Assembly: GCA_001643675.2 (NCBI GenBank)
Contig: LSRY02000007.1
Span: 930,001-994,000 of the forward strand
DNA: 64,000 bases
Origin: Monocercomonoides exilis PA203
Lineage: Eukaryota; Protista; Preaxostyla
Direction: 5' to 3'
Shown: positions 52,216-64,000 of the stretch, piece by piece
Layout of the letters: every line of letters starts with the position of its first letter
Numbering within the stretch: position 1 is the first letter of the stretch
Program-made: the position numbers and the translations under genes
The notes under the pieces: generated by a model
Seen by the model: only the letters and a program-made list of their open reading frames with translations
What the model was told of the DNA's origin: nothing
Databases searched by the model: none

Positions 52216-55200
52216 ATGAAGCTTTCGACTGGAAGCATTTTAGAAATTCATGGCGAGGTATTATTGCTTTATTTAACAAGAGAAAATTTGTTTTATTCAT
52301 TCAATTGTTATATGTTGATCGTGACTTGTCATGGTCCAATTTTAGGTCATACCATCTTCTGTTGAAGTTTTAGACCTTTCTAATAAAAATTTTACAGAAT
52401 CTGACACACTTTCCGAATTTCATTCTTTAAGAATATTGAACTTAAGGTTGAAAAAGATAATTTATATTTTATAAATAACAAATGTTTATTTTGAAAATTC
52501 AAATAAAAGCGGAAATGCTTTTCCAAATATAAAATCAATAGAAGGAATTTTTGATGCACAAAATCTTGAAGAATTAGATTTACGTGGCTCTCCTGTCTCA
52601 AAAATGTATATTTATCGAAAGAAACTTCCTGAGCGTCTACCAAAACTTTATTTGCTAGACGGACAGTTATGCCAAGAATTATGTTTTTATTCTATTAAAA
52701 TTATTTTTTACGAAAAATTATCTTTTAAGACAAATTCCTGGACGAACTGTTCCCGTTCACAAAGAAAAACAAGTTGTCCCAACAGAAAACCCACAAATTG
52801 ATAAATGCTCCTCAGTTTCTGCTGCTATTGAGAAATTTAGTGAAAAGCAATCAAGCTCTTCTTCTGCTTCTTCTCCCGCTTCTTCGACGACTTCATCATC
52901 TTCTCCACATATTCCGCTTTGGAGGCAGCGCGAGATAGAAAAGAAGAAAGCAGCTGAAGAACAAAAACGCTTGGAAGAAGAACGAATTAAAAGAGAAAGA
53001 GAAGAAGAGGAAGAAAACGAAAGAAAGAAAAAAGAGGAGGAAGAAGAAAAAGAAAGAAAAATGAGAGAAGAAGAAGAACGTAGAAAGAAAGAAAAAGAAG
53101 AAGAAGAGGAGAAGGAGAAAAAGAAGAAGGAAGCAGAAGCAGCAGCGGCAGCTGCAGCAGAAGAAGAACGAAGAAAAAAAGAAGCAGAGAAAATCAAGCT
53201 CCAAGAAGAAGCAGCACAAGATGCATCACTCATTGAGGCATGTGCTCGTTTTGGGATTCACATAGAAGACGCTGTGAAGCCAACGAGCAAGTCATCTACA
53301 GCCACATCTTCAGCAGACAAAGACAATAACCACTCGTCAAACAGCCTGCCATCGTGGAGAGCGCGGGAGTTTGAAAAGAAGAAAGAAGAGGCAGCAGCAA
53401 CAGCAGCAGTAACAGCATCGGCTAAGAGTGCGAATGAAACAACAAAATCGCTACGACCGGGTGATGTTGTGAAGGCGAATGAAACGACGAAAGCGCCTTC
53501 GAATATTCCTGCGTGGCGGCTGAGGGAGATGGAGAAGAAGAAAGCGGAAGAGGAGAGGAAGAGGAAAGAGGAGGAAGAGAAGAAAGAGAAGATTCGAAAG
53601 GAAATAGAAGAGATGGAGAAGGCAAAAAGGGAATATGAAGAGAAAATGCGAAGGATGGAAGGAGGAAATAGTGAGGAAGAAGATAAAAAGAAAGAGGAAG
53701 AGGAACAGGAAAGGAAGAAAAGAGAAGAAGAAGCAGAAAAGCTGAGATTAATTGAAGAAGAGAAGAAGAAGAAGAAGGAAGAAGAAGAGAGAAAGAAGAG
53801 AGAAGAAGAAGAACGATTGAGAAAAGAGGAGGAAGAGAGAAAACGCAAAGAGGAGGAAGAACGGAAGAAGAAAGAAGAAGAAGAAAGAAAACGTCAGGAA
53901 GAAGAGAGAAAGAGGAAAGAAGAAGAAGAGAAGAAGAAAAGAGAAGAAGAAGAGCGAAAGAAGAAGGAAGCTGAAGCCAAAGCAGAGGCAGAGGCAGAAG
54001 CAGAAAGAAAACGAAAAGAAGAGATTGAAAAGGCAAAGTTAGACAAGCCAGCCAAGTCTTCATATGGATCATCGAGTGTTAGCTCATCGACAACATTCAC
54101 CGCCACCTCCTCCCCGTCTGCCTTGTCTTTGTGGAAGCAAAGAGAACTTGAGCGCAAGAATGCAAGCGCCGATCAGAGAGGAGAAGAGAAGAAGCCTGCG
54201 CAGAATGTGAATACGTCTTCTTCTTCTTCCTCTTCCTCTTCTTTATCATCATTAACTTCTTCTTCAACACAAGGCGAATCAACAGTTTCTGCTGCGTTTG
54301 CTCGGTTTGGGGTTCGAAAGTCGTCAACATCAACTGCAAAAGCAATAATCAACACAAAAACAGCTTCAAGTATATCTTCATCTTCATCTCCATCTTCGTC
54401 TCCACCTTCATCTTCATCTCCATCTTCAATTTCTGGTTCACATTCTACAACATCTTTCCATTCTTTTGGTGCTGACAAAAGTGAATCCGATCAAAACAAG
54501 AAAGAAGAAGCAGAAGCAAAAGCTAAAGCAGATGACGATGCAAATGAAGAAAAGAACAGCAACGCGAATGAGAAAGAGGGAGCAGTCACAGAGAAAGAGG
54601 CAGAAATCAAGAAGAAAGAACAGGAGGTGCTGGAGATGTATGAAGATCTGAAAAGGAAAGAGGAGGAGATGAAGAAGAAAGAGGAAGTTCTCAAAAGGAA
54701 GATGGAGGAACTCAAAGAGAAGGAGAAGGTGAAAGAAGAGAAAGAGAAGGAAGAGAAAGAGAAGGAAGAGAAAGAGAAAGAACACACTCAACAAGAAGCA
54801 GTCACCACAAACAAGCCAACCATTGAGCCAAATGCTAACAAAGCTGCTGAAAGCGCCGAGGGAGAAAAGCCACTGCGTTCAGTCTGCAGCCGATTTGGAG
54901 TCAGAATTGGGTCGTCGCCACTTCAGAAAACGAATCATTTGGGTGATGTGGAGGCTCATCCACTGCAACATTCAGGTTCGGCACAGCTGGAGAAGAAAGA
55001 AGAGGCAAAAGAACAAGAAGAAGAGAAGGAGAAGGAAAGAAGAGAAAAGACAGGAGCAGAAGCTAAATATGAGTCTGTAAATGTTCTGTCTGAAAGCTCA
55101 GCGCCTGCGTCTTTTGTTGTGTCAGAGGCTTCTCCGCACACAGCATCCAATCAACACTCCCCTCCCACTCCTCCTCCTCCTTCGACTTCTTCTTCGTCTT

Positions 55201-56207
55201 CATCGTCATCGCCATTATCATCATCATCAGTATCATCATCATCATCTTCTTCTTCTTCACTCCACACTCACAGCTCTCCCCTCTCTTCCAGTGACTCAGC
55301 CACTTCTCCCACAAACACCACAAACAGCTTCAATTCTTCCACATTCCCTCATTCAACAAGACCTCGCGAGACGCTTTCTTCCACCAGCAGCAACTCGCTC
55401 CCGTCGCGTGCCCTTCTGCGGCCAACAGGAGCTGCCTGTGGAAGGACAGACAAACAACCACAAACAGGCAGTGACTATGCCAGTGGAGGAGGGCTGAGGC
55501 CGACTTTCGGCTCGTCTTCGGGTTCAGGTGCGAATGAGCAGTCAGCAGGCGAATCAACAACACATCCACAGAAGTTTAGTCCCGCAGTGCTGTCGAACGA
55601 TCCGTCAGGCAGCTTCGACAGGCCCTTCAGAACTTCACACACCCAGCTGCAACGCACACAGTCTGAGACTCCACAGTCGAGTGTGTCTTCTTTACTCTCA
55701 CAGTACTCTGCACCGTCTGCTATTTCTCCGAAGACAACGAGCACACACCAATCAACATCTCCTGCGCCTGTGCCTGCCCCACCGCCTCCGCTGGCTGGTC
55801 AGCATGCGCCCGATAGCGAGTCGCCTATCGCACGCATTGTGGGCCAAGGGCGGCAGGTGATGCCGATGCTTCCCTTCAACGTGAAGCTGAGGAAGACAGG
55901 TGCTGCCATTGCAAGCAGCTTGCCCAGCGAAGGATTTTCTAGCACCCCAGCTGCTCCGAATCCGCTGGTGAATCCACAGGGCAGTTATCCCCCGAATCCG
56001 TATGGCTCCTCGCAGAGAAGGATGCCGATGGGGTCAGCATCGTTCTCAGCGCCGTCGAGTGTGATGTCTGTGGTTGAGGCTCCGGATGAAGCGTCACATA
56101 AGAGGCTGTTCACAGAAGAGGACGATAGATCTGCGTGGTGCCCGAAGAAAAGGCTACCGTCGCAGCCGAAGCACAGGCCGTCGCTGGCTTCGAGGAGGAT
56201 GAAGTAG
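52216..56207 (+). CDS. N-terminal leucine-rich repeat + LRRcap protein with a long E/R/K charged helix and Ser/Pro-rich tail; exons 52216-52257, 52346-52446, 52510-52665, 52730-56207 (about 1258 aa)
   Basis: Spliced N-terminus reads VEVLDLSNKNF..LRILNLSGNAF..LEELDLRGSPV..YRKKLPERLPKLYLLDG. All three GT-AG introns are phase-consistent with ORF 52971-56207. Confidence 0.85.
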
Positions 56208-57104: not shown

Positions 57105-59950
57105 ATGTCTATTGATACGGGATATCATGTAGAAAATGATTATCCTCGTATAATTGTAGCACTTGAAATTTCAGAGTTTTATACTCAAATTGAAGAATTG
57201 AAAAATCAAGATTTAAAGCTAATACCATTGTGCGTTAAACAAATTGGAAAAAAAGAATATTTCGCAAGAAATTGGACTGCAATGTTGAATAATGCTCCAG
57301 AGCAAGGCTTAGTTGAGAAATTTAAAGAGCTACCTAATTCAACAATACTTTTGGCAAATCCAAAATTATCGCGTTCTGTATCGCTGGATTTTTTTAACTG
57401 CATTATATTTTTCTTGGAAAAATTGGCAAATCATTTAACTGAACAATTTTTTAAAAAAAGTCACGATTCGTTTCAAAAACCTCTTGAGCCAGCATTTGTA
57501 TTAGAGCAGCAGTCGCAACAGCTAATTTTTATCGACCTCTCAAATATCATTGTTACAATGATGAATGTTCTTCAGTTAAATGAAACAAAACAAGATATCA
57601 AGGATATTGAATGGAAAGGGTTTGTGTTCTGCCATCCATCAGACTCGTTTGAAGTTCAATCATCATCAATCACCAGTCCTTCTGGCTTTGTTCCTGTATC
57701 AAAACTTCAAAAAATATCGCAGTCTTATTATCGTAAAGCAAGCTCTAGTAAAAATGACGAAGAATTATTAATAAATCATTTAATGAAATATCTGAGCTTT
57801 GAGACTTCAGATTCATTTCTCTCTTCTTCTCTTATCAGAGACAACAAACACCTGCTTCTTGCTTCTATAATAATTAAATCATTACTTTCTATACTATCAC
57901 ATCAAGAACCTTTGCTTCAAGATTTAAATAAATTGTGCTCTTTAAATTCTGATATAATACCAACTCGTCTTCTTGGATACCCTTTGAGGTGCAATTGCGG
58001 AATCGCGTCAAACAAACTTCTGGCAATGGTTGCACTCGAAGAAAGCAAACACAGGATGGAGGAAAAAGTTCGATTAAACAACAATCTTATTCAAGAATTC
58101 GTGGAGTATGAAATATCAAGCATTCCACATTCTTCTATTTCTGCTAAGGAAGCCATGAGAAACGTTCCACTATCCGTGCTCGGATGGTTTGAACCTTCTC
58201 TCAAAGAAATCATTGTTTCTGCAAAACCCGGAATCGAGTGTGCCCCACATTATTTTAAGTGTATTAATATTTTTTCTGTTTCTCGTTATTGTTTGTCGAA
58301 AATTTATCATTCAGAAATTGTGAAGTTTTACTTGGTAAAACAAATGATGATCTTTGCGATCTATTTTCGGTGTATGTTATTCCTCGAAAAGGGACACTAC
58401 TCAGAAACTTAGCACTGGGAATAGATTTTTCAGCGATCTTACCTCATTATGTAGCATCTTCTTCTTCATTGAGCGCAAACTCATCCAATTCTGATTCATC
58501 TGATTCAGCTCATTTTGGCTCAAATGTTGATTCACCACAGTCTTCAATACCTGCCACATCTCAATCACCGACTTCAAATCAAACACAACTTCCTTCTTTC
58601 TGGTCTCAGGCTACCACTCAACAGAACCAAATAGAAGCCAATTCTTCAAGTAGATATTCATCATCTGCTTTTTCCATAGTGCATTCTTTTAAAGATAATC
58701 TGACTGTTCAGAAAAGCACACAAGGAAACATTCAGCCATTTTTATCTAATCGACACGAGCTACTTACTGAACTAAGCTCGCAAGCAGAGGAAGCAGTGGA
58801 ACTTATTCGAAGAGAGCACTCACTTTTTCAGAGGATGCCCCAGTTCGTTTCTGTGAAAATGATGATTCGTGGATGGTGGCAAACACTCAGAGGAACTTGG
58901 CGTCTATCTGATCCTTCTTTGTTTTGGAGTCATCTTTCTCTCACGACTTGGTTTGACACAAAAAAAGACTTGAACAAAGAAGTATCAGGTGATAAAGATA
59001 TTATTAGTGAAAAAGATGAACATTCTTCTGCAAAAAACGATCCATTTGTGAAATCATTTGGACAGTTGTTGAAAGATAGTCATTTGGATGAATATGAAAT
59101 TGAAAAAAAAGAAAACAAAGATACTCAAAAGAAATATGACACAACAACACCAAAAACAAATCTTCCAACAACATCTTGTTCTTCCAATCCATTTTCATTA
59201 GAAGCCCCACTTTCGAAAACACAAGCAAAGCCTCAGTCATCTTTTTCGTCTTTCTCATCCCTTCCTTCGTTTCAATCAAAACAGTCACATTCGTTAAACG
59301 AAGGAGCATTGCCGTATCCACCATTGTATCCAGCTGTACTGTTATACAACCAAGCTTTACGGCATATTGATTCTTTTTTCTCAAAGTTGCCTCCTGAGCA
59401 AAGTAAATTTCCAGTTATACACATTTCATTTATTTTGGATTCATTTGTTCCTTGCAATTCTAAAAGCAAGCTTTCTCCTAGGCCAACTTTATTCATGTCA
59501 GAAAATTCAGCATTGAACGCGAAATCCTCAGACATTAATTTTTTCTTGCCTGGAACATTTTCTCAAATACTTAAGAAAGCCTCCACACAAAATTTAAGCA
59601 AGCCAATAATATTATCCAGTAGTTCTGTTCAAGAACAATCATCAAAAGTTGTTCATAAAATCCCTTCTTGGAAATGTACACGTGGCAACTGTTGTTTTGC
59701 ACTTCCTCCAATTGTTATAACAAATCGAAGTGAATCATTTCAGAGTAACCTTCGTCCACTACTTCTTACATATAAAGAACTAAGTGCCGCTGTCAGCGAA
59801 GCAGTGTATCGAAGGGCGAATGAAATTCAAACGCATAGAGACAGTCACCTTGCAGATGATTTATCAAGACAAGAAAGACTAAGACAGATAGCTTTTCATG
59901 TAAAAGAGCCACAAATAACAGAAACAATAAATTCGTTTATTCAAACATAA
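57105..59950 (+). CDS. Divergent Y-family DNA polymerase (eta/iota-like), predicted catalytically impaired; exons 57105-58237 and 58315-59950 (about 922 aa)
   Basis: RIIVALEISEFYTQIEELKNQDLKLIPLCVKQ matches motif I (recalled iota [32 protein letters not shown]). CNCGIASNKLLAMVA matches motif IV, and LRNLALGID matches the thumb end. A 77-nt GT-AG intron joins the two ORFs in phase 2. Confidence 0.8.
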
Positions 59951-60318: not shown

Positions 60319-63300
60319 TCATTCTTCCATCCAAGGTTCTTGACTGTCAAAAGGAATGCGAAATTCATTTGTGGTTGTTGCTGTCATTGAATTCATCGTA
60401 TTTAGTGAATAATCAGATTTGTAGATCAATGGCTCAGTTTCGCTGAGTTGAGTTTTCAGAGTTTTGATCTTTTTTGTGTAGAATATAACGATTGTTAAAG
60501 TTAAAGCAACTAATAACACACAAACGCCTGCGATCAAAATTATTGCCCACAAGGGCATTTTCGTATCAGATTTTTGCTTATTAGAAATGTATGGCACGAA
60601 TATCTGAATGCGTTCTTGCTGTTCCTCTGTCTTCCAATACAATAGTGTGACTGAAAGTGAAGTGCCTTTATCCATATCATCCAAAATTTGCATAGAAATC
60701 ACTCCTTCAGCATATGTTTCATTAACATGCTTTGAAAACTCATAAACCTGATTATGAATATAGCCATTTGAAGTGTAGTTAACTTCAAATGTCAAATTAC
60801 ATGCAATTAATTTCTCACCTGAAAAGAAAAAAGTTGGAGTATTGTCAGTTATTTCAAAACCAACCGAATTTAAGGTTGGCTTGAACAAAAGAGGAAACTC
60901 ATCTTTGATTGCTGATCCGCCAACAGTGCAGTTTTCACGCTGCATCCAAAGAGAGGAGCCTGTTTCCACACCATCACCACTCTTTAACTTCTCCACAGAA
61001 AGATCACTATCAATGCAACGGATATTGTGCAAAGCAGAAGGGAAACCTTCAAACTTTGGTGAATTAAGACTAAAAGAGCAGTCATCAATAATCGTATTCG
61101 TTTCAAGAATGTACAGTCCCCCAACAGAACATGTTTGGAAAGATACATTTGTTAGCTTCAGATTTTGCGAATAAGATGCAAATATTGCTCCAGTTTTCCA
61201 CTTACAAGGAGTGGGCGGGTCTCCATTGAATATCTTTTTTGAATGCTTTGAGAATGAGTTTGAAAGAATGTCGTAGGTTAACAGTGACATGGAAGGAGAA
61301 ACGAGATATCCGTCTGAATTACTCAAAGATAATTTCCCCATGTAATCTGTTTCATAATTATCAACGGTTCGATGCTGAATACCCGAAAATTCACATTGAT
61401 CAAATGTTATAGAACAATTTTCAACATTGACAGCACAGCCGAGGCAGAAGCTAACGAGACACTCCTTCATGACCATATCAATAATTCGTATAGGATTTTT
61501 AAGTTTTTGCAAAATAACAAGCCCTTCGGAATGAGGTCCAGCATCAATTTTATTGAAGGAAAACGAAGTCAAGTCAATGCTGCTTTCATTTTCATTCGTA
61601 GGATCAGCTTGCTCACTCGATTCTGGACTATCACCCGAAAAACTTGAAGAAGAATAAGGATTAACAATTTTCAGCACAACTCCATCATTCAGTTTGACAT
61701 TGGTAACTTCAAAATGATCAATAATTAGTTTTTTATGTTCGACAGGATCGTATTCAAAACGAACGATTTTTATCATATCCGTCTTTGTTAACGTCGTTTT
61801 TTGATTAACCTCAAATATACGAGTGGATGTTAGATTAACATTCACAATTATGTCAACTGTCATTAGTTCTCTTTCCAAATCGAGATGGTGGATCTGAGTA
61901 TTGATTGCTACTAGTTTTCCTCTTTCTATGCTAATTAAAATAGGAGATATTGCTACGTTACCACCTTCCTCGGATTTGAACCCACATGAATCAAAACTAA
62001 GATTTCCATCCTTCATGTGAATAAATATTTCATGAATCGTTTCAAACTGTGATGTGAACGAGAAGGCTAACCGTTGCATCTGTGACATTTCAGCACATTC
62101 AATAACAGCTTGATTAACAGAAGCCGATAAAATTGAGCTATTAATAAGCACCTTTGCAGTTGAGCCAATCACTTGTTGAGATAGACCAGAATTTGTCAGT
62201 CGGATGTCGCTGATGAGAGTAGTTCTATCGATAACGAACAGAATTCCATATTGTGTGAAAGAGAGATGACTTACACCTTTTGCGAGAGAATAGCATGGAT
62301 TTGACTGCTCACCACAAGTGGGAGTATCCTTGCTGGAATCTGAAACATAAACATTTGTAAAGCGAGTTGAAGCATACACCTTTATAACATCAATAAAATT
62401 CGTATCTCCCTCACTCATAGCTGCAATTGCTTCATGCTCTTTGATTTTTGAGGTATCAAGATGAAAAAGAATATCGTTCAGTTGAGTATTTTCGTCCTTA
62501 CAATATAAAAATGCCAATGGTCCTACATTTGCCCTATTCGAAGAGCTTTGAACGAGGTTGAATGTTATTGAGGCTAACTTTGATATGGAAGCGCCATGCA
62601 ACGAAATATCAATATACACAGCTCCTCCTTTACCATAATTCGCACAGAAGCAATTTGTAAAATTTGTTTCAATAAAAAAGCATCCCAGAACATCGTCAGC
62701 CACTGTACAAATAACACCACCTTTAGCTGATTTCTCATTTCCACAATCAGAAAAAGAACAATTGGTAAAACACATTCCCACAGAACTTTTAGTTGTTTTC
62801 AATTCGCTGAGATCTGAAACAAGTGCCGCTGCATGATCTGAAGTACCAGCATCCGTACGCTGAAGTTTTACTACACGAGTTGCTTCAAGATGAATAGAGC
62901 CAGTTTGATCGGAGCGAGCATAAAAAGAAGCTCCTTCAAAAGTTAGGTGAGATATATCACATGAATAAAGTTCAACTTCAGCTTCACTACCAGTAACAAA
63001 AAGAGGTCGTGAAATTGAAAATTTTGAATTTGAACTCGAGTGCGAAAAGAAACTGGATTCAAATATTGTGGGATACTCTGTTGTGAAAAGAATATTAAAC
63101 AGCATTAACGATATCTGAGGCTTTGATTCTATCACTTCAAAAAGAGTCATCGAGGTACTTTCACACGACGATTCATTTATAAAAAATGTGATGTCACGAA
63201 TTTGTGTTGTGATTTTATCTGCAATCACGAAGAGTGAAGAGGATGACTGATAATCAGATATAATTCCTTGCGTTGTATCAATAACAGTTCTAGTTTTTTC

Positions 63301-64000
63301 CTTGCCATAAATAACTACGTTCGAATGTTGTAGCACAATTGAGTGAGTTTCCTTTGTCAGCACATCTGCAATTATTTGAAACGTTGATTGAATTAACGGA
63401 AACTTTTGCTGAACAGCAAAATAAATGGTTTCGCAAGGTTCCGCACCTAGAGACCCGCAAGTATCATCATTATCTTCACCATCAGTTCCCGCAATTGTTC
63501 GTCTTTGGACTCTGGTAAGAGTGTAACTTATATCATCCATTTTCGAATCAGCTTTGACGAGAATAGCTGATTGTTGACGGCAGCTCGTGAAACAGTGCAA
63601 AAATATATTTTCAGGTTCACGGATAATACCATGAGAATCAACAATCATTATATCAGAAGCAACATCGACTTCAATTTTCATGATAATATTAAGCTCAAAA
63701 TTACAATCAATAAACAGAGGTGAATTAGCGTTCTTTAAATGACCATATCCACATGCCCAATAGCCTCCACTAGCAGAATCTGAACGGCACTGAATAAAGT
63801 CACATTCTGATGCAACAGGTTGTTGACTTGAATTTGCATTATCAACATAACACCCGCCTCCGGATCCTTTCACAGACCTTGCGCAATGACATGAGTCAAA
63901 TACACAACTAGTCATAAGGTAAAATCGTGGATCATTAGAGTTTGAAGAAGTGAAAGAATGTTCCATTTCAATAGAATCTCCATGAACATTTCCAATATAT
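60319..64000 (-). CDS. Type I membrane beta-helix repeat protein, 5'-partial, paralogue of the 4081-aa protein but with a short tail and no kinase remnant
   Basis: Two CG-xxxx-PC modules, GGxxY motifs, shared juxtamembrane domain (FPSALHNIRC..LKSGDG..SSLWM) and TM LWAIILIAGVCVLLVALTLTIVIFY. The frame stays open to the window edge. Confidence 0.85.
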   Translation of the reverse strand, partial: YIGNVHGDSIEMEHSFTSSNSNDPRFYLMTSCVFDSCHCARSVKGSGGGCYVDNANSSQQPVASECDFIQCRSDSASGGYWACGYGHLKNANSPLFIDCNFELNIIMKIEVDVASDIMIVDSHGIIREPENIFLHCFTSCRQQSAILVKADSKMDDISYTLTRVQRRTIAGTDGEDNDDTCGSLGAEPCETIYFAVQQKFPLIQSTFQIIADVLTKETHSIVLQHSNVVIYGKEKTRTVIDTTQGIISDYQSSSSLFVIADKITTQIRDITFFINESSCESTSMTLFEVIESKPQISLMLFNILFTTEYPTIFESSFFSHSSSNSKFSISRPLFVTGSEAEVELYSCDISHLTFEGASFYARSDQTGSIHLEATRVVKLQRTDAGTSDHAAALVSDLSELKTTKSSVGMCFTNCSFSDCGNEKSAKGGVICTVADDVLGCFFIETNFTNCFCANYGKGGAVYIDISLHGASISKLASITFNLVQSSSNRANVGPLAFLYCKDENTQLNDILFHLDTSKIKEHEAIAAMSEGDTNFIDVIKVYASTRFTNVYVSDSSKDTPTCGEQSNPCYSLAKGVSHLSFTQYGILFVIDRTTLISDIRLTNSGLSQQVIGSTAKVLINSSILSASVNQAVIECAEMSQMQRLAFSFTSQFETIHEIFIHMKDGNLSFDSCGFKSEEGGNVAISPILISIERGKLVAINTQIHHLDLERELMTVDIIVNVNLTSTRIFEVNQKTTLTKTDMIKIVRFEYDPVEHKKLIIDHFEVTNVKLNDGVVLKIVNPYSSSSFSGDSPESSEQADPTNENESSIDLTSFSFNKIDAGPHSEGLVILQKLKNPIRIIDMVMKECLVSFCLGCAVNVENCSITFDQCEFSGIQHRTVDNYETDYMGKLSLSNSDGYLVSPSMSLLTYDILSNSFSKHSKKIFNGDPPTPCKWKTGAIFASYSQNLKLTNVSFQTCSVGGLYILETNTIIDDCSFSLNSPKFEGFPSALHNIRCIDSDLSVEKLKSGDGVETGSSLWMQRENCTVGGSAIKDEFPLLFKPTLNSVGFEITDNTPTFFFSGEKLIACNLTFEVNYTSNGYIHNQVYEFSKHVNETYAEGVISMQILDDMDKGTSLSVTLLYWKTEEQQERIQIFVPYISNKQKSDTKMPLWAIILIAGVCVLLVALTLTIVIFYTKKIKTLKTQLSETEPLIYKSDYSLNTMNSMTATTTNEFRIPFDSQEPWMEE

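Follow-up and report, generated by a model that had tools for sequence, protein, structure and literature searches.

MONOS_7190 of Monocercomonoides exilis, a conserved oxymonad relative of Y-family DNA polymerases that has lost the catalytic residues

Introduction

Translesion polymerases can act as scaffolds without catalysis, as mutants (of REV1, and of human Pol eta with Rad18) and the bacterial protein ImuB have shown. ImuB, a Y-family protein without catalytic activity, binds the clamp and serves the polymerase DnaE2 (PMC11791113, PMC6511836, PMC10421592), and human Pol eta helps to bring Rad18 to PCNA independently of its polymerase activity (PMC3597682). Our literature search found no natural, conserved, catalytically dead Y-family protein in a eukaryote, and the main text of the Monocercomonoides exilis genome paper does not mention translesion polymerases. 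Here we describe a gene from a 64,000-nucleotide stretch of the M. exilis PA203 genome (GenBank assembly GCA_001643675.2, contig LSRY02000007.1, positions 930,001 to 994,000 of the forward strand), referred to below as the window. A word-based protein search identified the protein encoded at window positions 57105-59950 as the product of the M. exilis gene MONOS_7190. As judged from sequence comparison, MONOS_7190 is not a pseudogene: it is a maintained pseudo-enzyme that is conserved across at least three oxymonad genera.

Like MONOS_7190, ImuB is a naturally dead Y-family member that is kept by selection, and a role as clamp-binding adaptor for another polymerase is attributed to it. ImuB is bacterial, however, carries beta-clamp and RecA-NT motifs, and belongs to an SOS cassette with imuA and dnaE2, whereas MONOS_7190 lies in a eukaryotic nuclear genome, contains a spliceosomal intron, and has unrelated neighbors, and its partners are only proposed. 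Catalytic loss in oxymonads is evidently independent of that in ImuB, and by analogy the resemblance between the two proteins would be functional only. MONOS_7190 would then represent the ImuB idea in a eukaryote, arrived at independently, with a function that we infer.

Among eukaryotic enzymes, Pol eta (Rad30/POLH) offers several points of likeness. The palm and fingers are homologous, motifs I to V are collinear, and the helix of a Cys/His module matches the UBZ of Candida Pol eta in the pattern H-x-D-x-H-x-A-x-x-L-S. A PIP-like (PCNA-interacting peptide-like) C-terminal tail and a second PIP-like motif just after the core are further similarities, the latter placed as in human PIP1 (PMC8784325). 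Unlike Pol eta, MONOS_7190 has other residues in place of each catalytic acid (Asp, Asp, and Glu) and of the Tyr and Arg in the fingers, and the zinc knuckle has the form C-x4-C and lies 47 residues ahead of the His pair. A 91-residue Ser-rich insertion in the putative thumb-to-little-finger linker and a stretch of about 150 residues inside the putative little finger also set it apart, and its similarity to Pol eta is too low for assignment to a subfamily, with Pol iota outscoring eta. REV1 is a Y-family member with a mainly scaffold role and is the only other Y-family gene in M. exilis, but M. exilis REV1 retains the SCDE motif and matches IMS with an E-value of 1.6e-26, in contrast to about 1e-4 for MONOS_7190, which lacks the catalytic acids. 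Among solved structures, Pol iota scores best with the family profile (E = 1.2e-5, residues 11-101); it is catalytically active, and its score margin over the other subfamilies is small. Pol iota carries UBM-type ubiquitin-binding motifs rather than a Cys/His module.

Results and Discussion

The N-terminal region of MONOS_7190 is related to the Y-family palm and fingers

The two exons of MONOS_7190 were searched separately, and two database models of the protein, P0001 (615 aa, EukProt) and P0006 (771 aa, NCBI), were used where the exon junction mattered. Exon 1 (window 57105..58237, plus strand; residues 1-377 plus two nucleotides of codon 378) covers a degenerate palm and fingers and the start of a putative thumb. 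Pfam IMS (PF00817) matched residues 23-103 of this exon with an E-value of 1.8e-4 and 21.9 bits, just under the cutoff of 23.2 bits, and IMS was also the top Pfam match in the orthologues from Streblomastix (E = 1.4e-3) and Blattamonas (E = 0.025). When a profile built from four family N-termini was compared with the PDB, the best match was Pol iota (E = 1.2e-5, residues 11-101), followed by Dpo4 (about 1e-3), Pol eta (0.011), and Pol kappa (0.07). Y-family chains accounted for 58 of the 59 matches, REV1 chains not being among them. A protein-language-model search agreed, in that its ten best family-bearing matches all carry IMS, at modest scores of 0.84-0.87. Because of the IMS matches, the PDB profile matches, and the language-model neighbors, we regard it as established at the sequence level that the first ~160 residues are homologous to the Y-family palm and fingers. 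Motifs I, II, and III and the GIAxNK motif are collinear with those of Pol iota.

The catalytic and nucleotide-binding residues are replaced

The remnant of motif I, ALEISEFY (residues 19-26; 57159..57182, plus strand), aligns with Pol iota HVDLDCFY in HMMER, which places E21 at the first catalytic Asp and S23 at the second conserved Asp. The corresponding stretches of the other orthologues read LEIGHFY, IRIKDFL, and VQIRNFY. In the fingers, the motif II remnant NWTAML (residues 56-61; 57270..57287, plus strand) aligns with NYEARK of Pol iota, so that the Tyr and Arg that bind the incoming deoxynucleoside triphosphate are W57 and M60; Blattamonas retains the Tyr. The motif III remnant, EQQSQQLIFIDLS (residues 134-146, from E134 to S146; 57504..57542, plus strand), aligns with Pol iota ERLGFDENFVDLT and has Q139 and L140 in place of the catalytic Asp-Glu pair, in a register that is set by the conserved ER...(Y/F)xDL(S/T) frame, as the stretch alone scores only 0.7 bits. 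Orthologous motif III sequences are TQALLYLDLS and GLDLLYIDLS, in which the Asp-Glu pair is Ala-Leu in Blattamonas and Asp-Leu in Streblomastix. In the orthologues from Blattamonas, Streblomastix, and a metagenome the catalytic acids are missing as well: none of the three positions of the metal ligands keeps a carboxylate across the family, and each of the three sequences that extend over the catalytic Glu position has Leu there.

The initial annotation of the window, made by a model from the letters and their open reading frames, had described a Y-family pseudo-polymerase that lost the acids of motifs I and III and kept a degraded fingers motif. The IMS and PDB comparisons and the alignments with Pol iota bear this description out, with the acids mapping to E21, Q139, and L140 and the fingers showing Tyr to Trp and Arg to Met replacements. 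The proposal that the protein is non-catalytic held up as well: possible alternative active-site acids were looked for in the alignments and found no support, E21 and E24 not being conserved.

MONOS_7190 belongs to a fast-evolving family found across oxymonads

An exhaustive phmmer search of 1.8 billion representatives returned only four real relatives, including MONOS_7190 itself. The other three are BLNAU_16516 of Blattamonas nauphoetae, which is intact at 1268 aa and shares 34% identity over residues 11-367, and two fragments, one of 163 aa from Streblomastix strix and one of 111 aa from a metagenome. Every named source is an oxymonad, and the database entries for these proteins are all labeled hypothetical. 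A word-based protein search with exon 1 found nothing but MONOS_7190 itself, and a metagenome scan with two family sequences gave 133 pattern matches, none of which was confirmed. Identity at the N-terminus is 35%, and exon 2 matches the Blattamonas protein with a BLASTP E-value of 2e-29. The Streblomastix contig holds further exons of the orthologue, which is a multi-exon gene there. We read the family as a fast-evolving lineage spread across oxymonads.

The homologous codon N407 of Blattamonas is interrupted by a phase-2 intron, like E378 of M. exilis. Long open frames, intact orthologues, identity concentrated in the core blocks, and this shared intron together suggest purifying selection on a non-catalytic function, at a divergence too great for dN/dS to be meaningful. 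The Blattamonas intron (L009:4221-4252, GTATGT...TTAG) is only 32 nt long, compared with 77 nt in M. exilis.

MONOS_7190 is a single-copy gene in the M. exilis genome. Two long plus-strand open frames, 57105-58412 and 58289-59950, underlie it, and the open reading frame list together with a reading of the sequence gives a model of two exons and 922 codons, separated by a 77-nt GT..AG intron (58238..58314, plus strand) that lies in phase 2 inside codon E378. Exon 2 (58315..59950, plus strand; residues 378-922 plus the stop codon) holds the rest of the putative thumb, a linker insertion, a putative little finger, and a C-terminal extension. The exon junction is identical in P0001 and P0006, which confirms the splice, and the joined frame of our model is intact at 922 aa, as first described; every string quoted in that description was found where it had been placed. 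The G+C content of the coding sequence is 34-37%, compared with about 23% in the flanks.

The rest of the putative core is conserved and has motifs collinear with those of Y-family enzymes

At the border of palm and thumb, the stretch CGIASNKLLAMVA (residues 298-310; 57996..58034, plus strand) resembles the canonical GIAxNKxLAK. Its CGIASNK is collinear with Pol iota AGVASNKLLA, a match that is short and not significant alone, and the motif is kept in Blattamonas and Streblomastix. A GID.. motif at residues 410-422 is also collinear with the Y-family core. After the palm, strongly conserved blocks occur at residues 510-600, 717-726, and 745-755. The block at residues 510-562 (58709..58867, plus strand), which we assign to the first half of the putative little finger, is the best conserved of the family, with 46% identity to Blattamonas and 31% to Streblomastix. 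The second half would lie at 59330..59446 (plus strand), where a conserved helix (residues 717-726) and strand (residues 745-755) are found; this segment is conserved with Blattamonas, and tblastn locates its counterpart in the Streblomastix contig. From the collinear CGIASNK and GID.. motifs, the conserved blocks, and the separate Streblomastix exons, we infer that the thumb and little finger are homologous to those of the Y-family as well, and a four-domain Y-family fold is likely for MONOS_7190.

PIP-like motifs follow the core and end the protein

Three short stretches of MONOS_7190, QTQLPSFW, SSDINFFL, and TETINSFI, fit PIP-like patterns in a motif scan. The first of these (residues 467-474; 58580-58603) had been called a canonical PIP box. 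It is indeed a strict match, of a kind expected 0.03 times per shuffle of exon 2, which we regard as borderline, but it is not conserved, since it sits in an M. exilis-specific Ser-rich linker insertion (residues 419-509, 91 aa; 58436..58708, plus strand) in which 28 of 91 residues are Ser. This insertion is largely missing in Blattamonas, whose linker is about 66 aa shorter there. QTQLPSFW may be a lineage-specific gain or a coincidence.

The C-terminal tail TETINSFIQT (residues 913-922; 59918..59947, plus strand; TETINSFI being residues 913-920) resembles in position and form the PIPs that lie at the C-terminus of Pol eta in human and yeast, MQTLESFF and SKNILSFF (PMC8784325). The initial annotation had singled out ETINSFI in this tail. 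The motif is present and Pol-eta-like, but its non-Q, Pol-eta-style pattern is expected 1.85 times by chance in exon 2, and the tail is absent from Blattamonas, where the protein runs on for about 280 residues past its His pair.

SSDINFFL (residues 782-789; 59525..59548, plus strand), which came from our motif scan and was absent from the initial annotation, follows the core and resembles PIP1 of human Pol eta, STDITSFL, likewise placed just after the catalytic core (PMC8784325). Blattamonas has KRSLNLFF-LP near this position, in a different register and in an ambiguous part of the alignment. The motif scan found no strict or relaxed PIP anywhere in the Blattamonas protein.

A further candidate, QGNIQPFL (residues 514-521; 58721-58744), had been proposed as a second PIP box and was rejected. 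It opens the best-conserved block of the family, and it aligns with KGNIYRPS in Blattamonas and HQNFNSTI in Streblomastix, neither of which is a PIP. Relaxed PIP patterns of this kind are expected 0.13 times per exon-2 shuffle. We read QGNIQPFL as the start, probably the first strand, of the putative little finger.

The C-terminal extension contains a UBZ-like helix

A Cys knuckle of the form C-x4-C, SWKCTRGNCC (residues 829-838; 59666..59695, plus strand), is conserved with Blattamonas PPWICDKPSC (local BLAST E = 2e-4); no other C-x(2-4)-C occurs in exon 2. Downstream of it lies the UBZ-like helix THRDSHLADDL (residues 884-894; 59831..59863, plus strand), which contains H-x-D-x-H-x-A-x-x-L. 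Extended by one residue, this helix (THRDSHLADDLS, residues 884-895) shares 7 of its 12 residues, namely H, D, H, A, D, L, and S, with the UBZ helix of Candida Pol eta, EHNDYHIAMDLS (PMC8784325). The pattern H.D.H.A..L is expected only about 1e-4 times in exon 2 by chance. An AlphaFold2 model of the C-terminal 104 aa had a pLDDT (predicted local distance difference test) of 65, with 73-88 in the region of the UBZ-like helix.

Docking of M. exilis ubiquitin (L013:1495-1722), together with zinc, to P0006 (residues 672-771) gave a median ipSAE of 0.40, compared with 0.00 for the best control, with a partner pLDDT of 71-73 and at least 81% of contacts shared between runs. Among solved complexes, 51 of 78 attain the docking mark, as do 2 of 108 mismatched pairs. 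Our value falls in the range up to 0.60, where just 5 of these 78 complexes lie, along with all 4 of the mismatched pairs that passed, and the docking tool rates it as weak support. Since the helix match is independent of the docking, the docked model, in our reading, mildly supports binding of ubiquitin by the M. exilis protein.

REV1 appears to be the only active Y-family enzyme of M. exilis

The initial annotation suggested looking for a catalytically intact eta or iota paralogue. Six-frame searches of the 82-Mb assembly with IMS and a full-length Dpo4-type model turned up a single further locus, C63:395405-396428 (minus strand). This locus matches human REV1 best among solved structures (E = 5.9e-21) and IMS with an E-value of 1.6e-26, and its motif III SCDE is intact. 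These searches found no canonical Pol eta, iota, or kappa in the assembly, and REV1 thus appears, from its sequence, to be the only active Y-family enzyme of M. exilis. The palm exon of M. exilis REV1 contains an acidic low-complexity insertion of about 120 aa.

The best zf_UBZ match in the genome was a sub-threshold one to a 659-aa open reading frame at C24:1118964-1120943 (L016:1165-3144, minus strand). We read this protein as PCF11-like, with an N-terminal CID-type region and two C2H2-like fingers, and rejected it as a polymerase because it is a CID-domain C2H2 protein.

PCNA_N matched at two separate multi-exon loci, C15:1455138-1455622 and C39:367995-368472, and M. exilis may have two PCNA paralogues. 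These two loci bear on any clamp-binding hypothesis.

MONOS_7190 may act as a non-catalytic adaptor in DNA-damage tolerance

On balance, we lean toward the explanation that MONOS_7190 is an oxymonad pseudo-enzyme of the Y-family superfamily that acts as a non-catalytic adaptor in DNA-damage tolerance. The lineage would descend from Pol eta or from the eta/iota branch, a descent suggested by the UBZ-like Cys/His module, the Pol-eta-style PIP-like tail, and the lack of any other Pol eta candidate. The protein would be unable to polymerize, and it would bring itself or partners such as REV1 or Rad18-type factors to PCNA or ubiquitin through its short C-terminal motifs. Such a role would be akin to that of bacterial ImuB and to the non-catalytic one of human Pol eta. 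The motifs weakly support binding of PCNA and ubiquitin, and we offer as a hypothesis that MONOS_7190 may be a reader of ubiquitinated PCNA, the function proposed by the initial annotation. Loss of catalysis would fit the biology of an anaerobic gut symbiont without exposure to ultraviolet light. Such an organism has little need to bypass ultraviolet-induced dimers, so that catalysis would come under weaker selection even as the protein kept its other roles.

A more specific version, which we consider rather doubtful, is that oxymonads swapped Pol eta for a dead descendant that serves as an obligatory, ImuB-like adaptor, reading PCNA or ubiquitin and then handing lesions to REV1 (and Pol zeta) or recruiting the machinery that ubiquitinates PCNA. 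If this were true, the non-catalytic function of Pol eta would have been isolated in nature. If MONOS_7190 still binds PCNA or ubiquitin, it would be a natural separation-of-function allele and would show which Pol eta functions are useful to an anaerobic gut protist that is shielded from ultraviolet light and has REV1 alone as an active Y-family enzyme.

Several results weigh against the adaptor explanation or the model on which it is built. The public gene models are shorter than ours: P0006 begins at M152 and P0001 at M308, leaving out the N-terminal 151 and 307 residues, respectively. The omitted segments are window 57105-57557 (residues 1-151) in P0006 and 57105-58025 (residues 1-307) in P0001, and both models use internal Met starts. 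The region missing from them carries the Y-family motif remnants, and because the in-frame upstream open frame is conserved with Blattamonas and Streblomastix, the public models are probably truncated at the N-terminus. Correcting them matters, since it is the absent 151-307 residues that reveal the nature of the protein. With regard to the fold, profiles of the putative thumb and little finger matched no Y-family structure in the PDB, Pfam IMS_C was not detected in a search of the genome, and the AlphaFold2 model of exon 1, built from a four-sequence alignment, had a pLDDT of 39.9 and was unusable as confirmation of the fold. With regard to the subfamily, the best PDB match is Pol iota rather than eta.

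The C-terminal motifs contribute the remaining points. None of the PIP-like motifs of M. exilis recurs at the equivalent position in Blattamonas. Of the UBZ-like end that the initial annotation described, the helix stands, matching the Candida UBZ as set out above, and the rest of the finger fares less well. AlphaFold2 predicts one long C-terminal helix and no zinc-finger hairpin, Pfam zf_UBZ gives no match, and the Cys pair lies 47 residues before the His pair, compared with about 10 in the Candida UBZ. The Cys-to-His spacing in Pol eta UBZ domains is generally 10-12 residues. Blattamonas has HRKTH followed by a proline-containing stretch, in which the UBZ helix residues Asp, Ala, and Leu are missing; Lys takes the place of the Asp that contacts ubiquitin, and the alignment of this His pair to the M. 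exilis helix is ambiguous.

Alternative explanations

The main alternative is a conserved pseudo-polymerase whose role has nothing to do with PCNA or ubiquitin, for example one that binds DNA structures or chromatin through the retained core and in which the short motifs are vestigial or coincidental. We consider this unlikely but a possibility to be taken seriously. Core blocks that are conserved next to short motifs that are not conserved in position would fit it, as would relaxed and eta-style PIP patterns that are expected by chance, an undetected zf_UBZ, and the weakness of the docking support; set against these are the H-x-D-x-H-x-A-x-x-L-S match to the Pol eta UBZ helix, which is improbable by chance, the conserved Cys knuckle, the strict PIP expectation of 0.03, and a ubiquitin docking score above all controls.

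A decaying pseudogene, or a mis-annotated open frame without function, is improbable. The sequence is extremely divergent and the public gene models are truncated, but frames of 377 and 545 codons persist between flanks of about 23% G+C, and the identity islands of 31-46% coincide with core elements. Comparison with the orthologues points the same way, given an intact 1268-aa protein in Blattamonas, a multi-exon gene in Streblomastix, and a conserved intron.

Less probable still is a polymerase that remains active by using E21, E24, and D144 as alternative acids. E21 occupies the position of the first catalytic Asp in both M. exilis and Blattamonas, and D144 is invariant; the two remaining orthologues, however, have Arg or Gln at position 21, position 24 is E, H, D, and N across the four sequences, and D144 is the Asp of the canonical (Y/F)xDL(T/S) frame, outside the catalytic Asp-Glu pair. 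The position of the catalytic Glu is Leu wherever the sequences reach it, and the Tyr and Arg that bind the triphosphate are gone as well.

Finally, a chance IMS signal in a protein with no relation to the Y-family can hardly account for the data: the Pfam score is under the gathering threshold, only ~100-160 residues align, and the exon 1 model gives no structural confirmation, but IMS is the top match independently in three orthologues, the profile reaches 1.2e-5 with nearly all of its matches in the Y-family, motifs I, II, and III and GIAxNK are collinear, and the language-model neighbors all carry IMS.

Genomic surroundings of MONOS_7190

In Blattamonas, a gene for an RFC small subunit (L009:1327-2676, minus strand) lies head-to-head with the orthologue (L009:3001-6839, plus strand), about 325 bp away. 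This arrangement is absent at the M. exilis locus, where the neighbors are unrelated. For the two open reading frames that flank MONOS_7190, Pfam gave no match at an E-value of 0.01. The 5' flanking gene (window 52971-56207, plus strand) is a 1078-aa open reading frame that is low in complexity and rich in Glu, Lys, and Ser, and the 3' flanking gene (window 60319-63966, minus strand) is a 1215-aa open reading frame with a C-terminal hydrophobic stretch.

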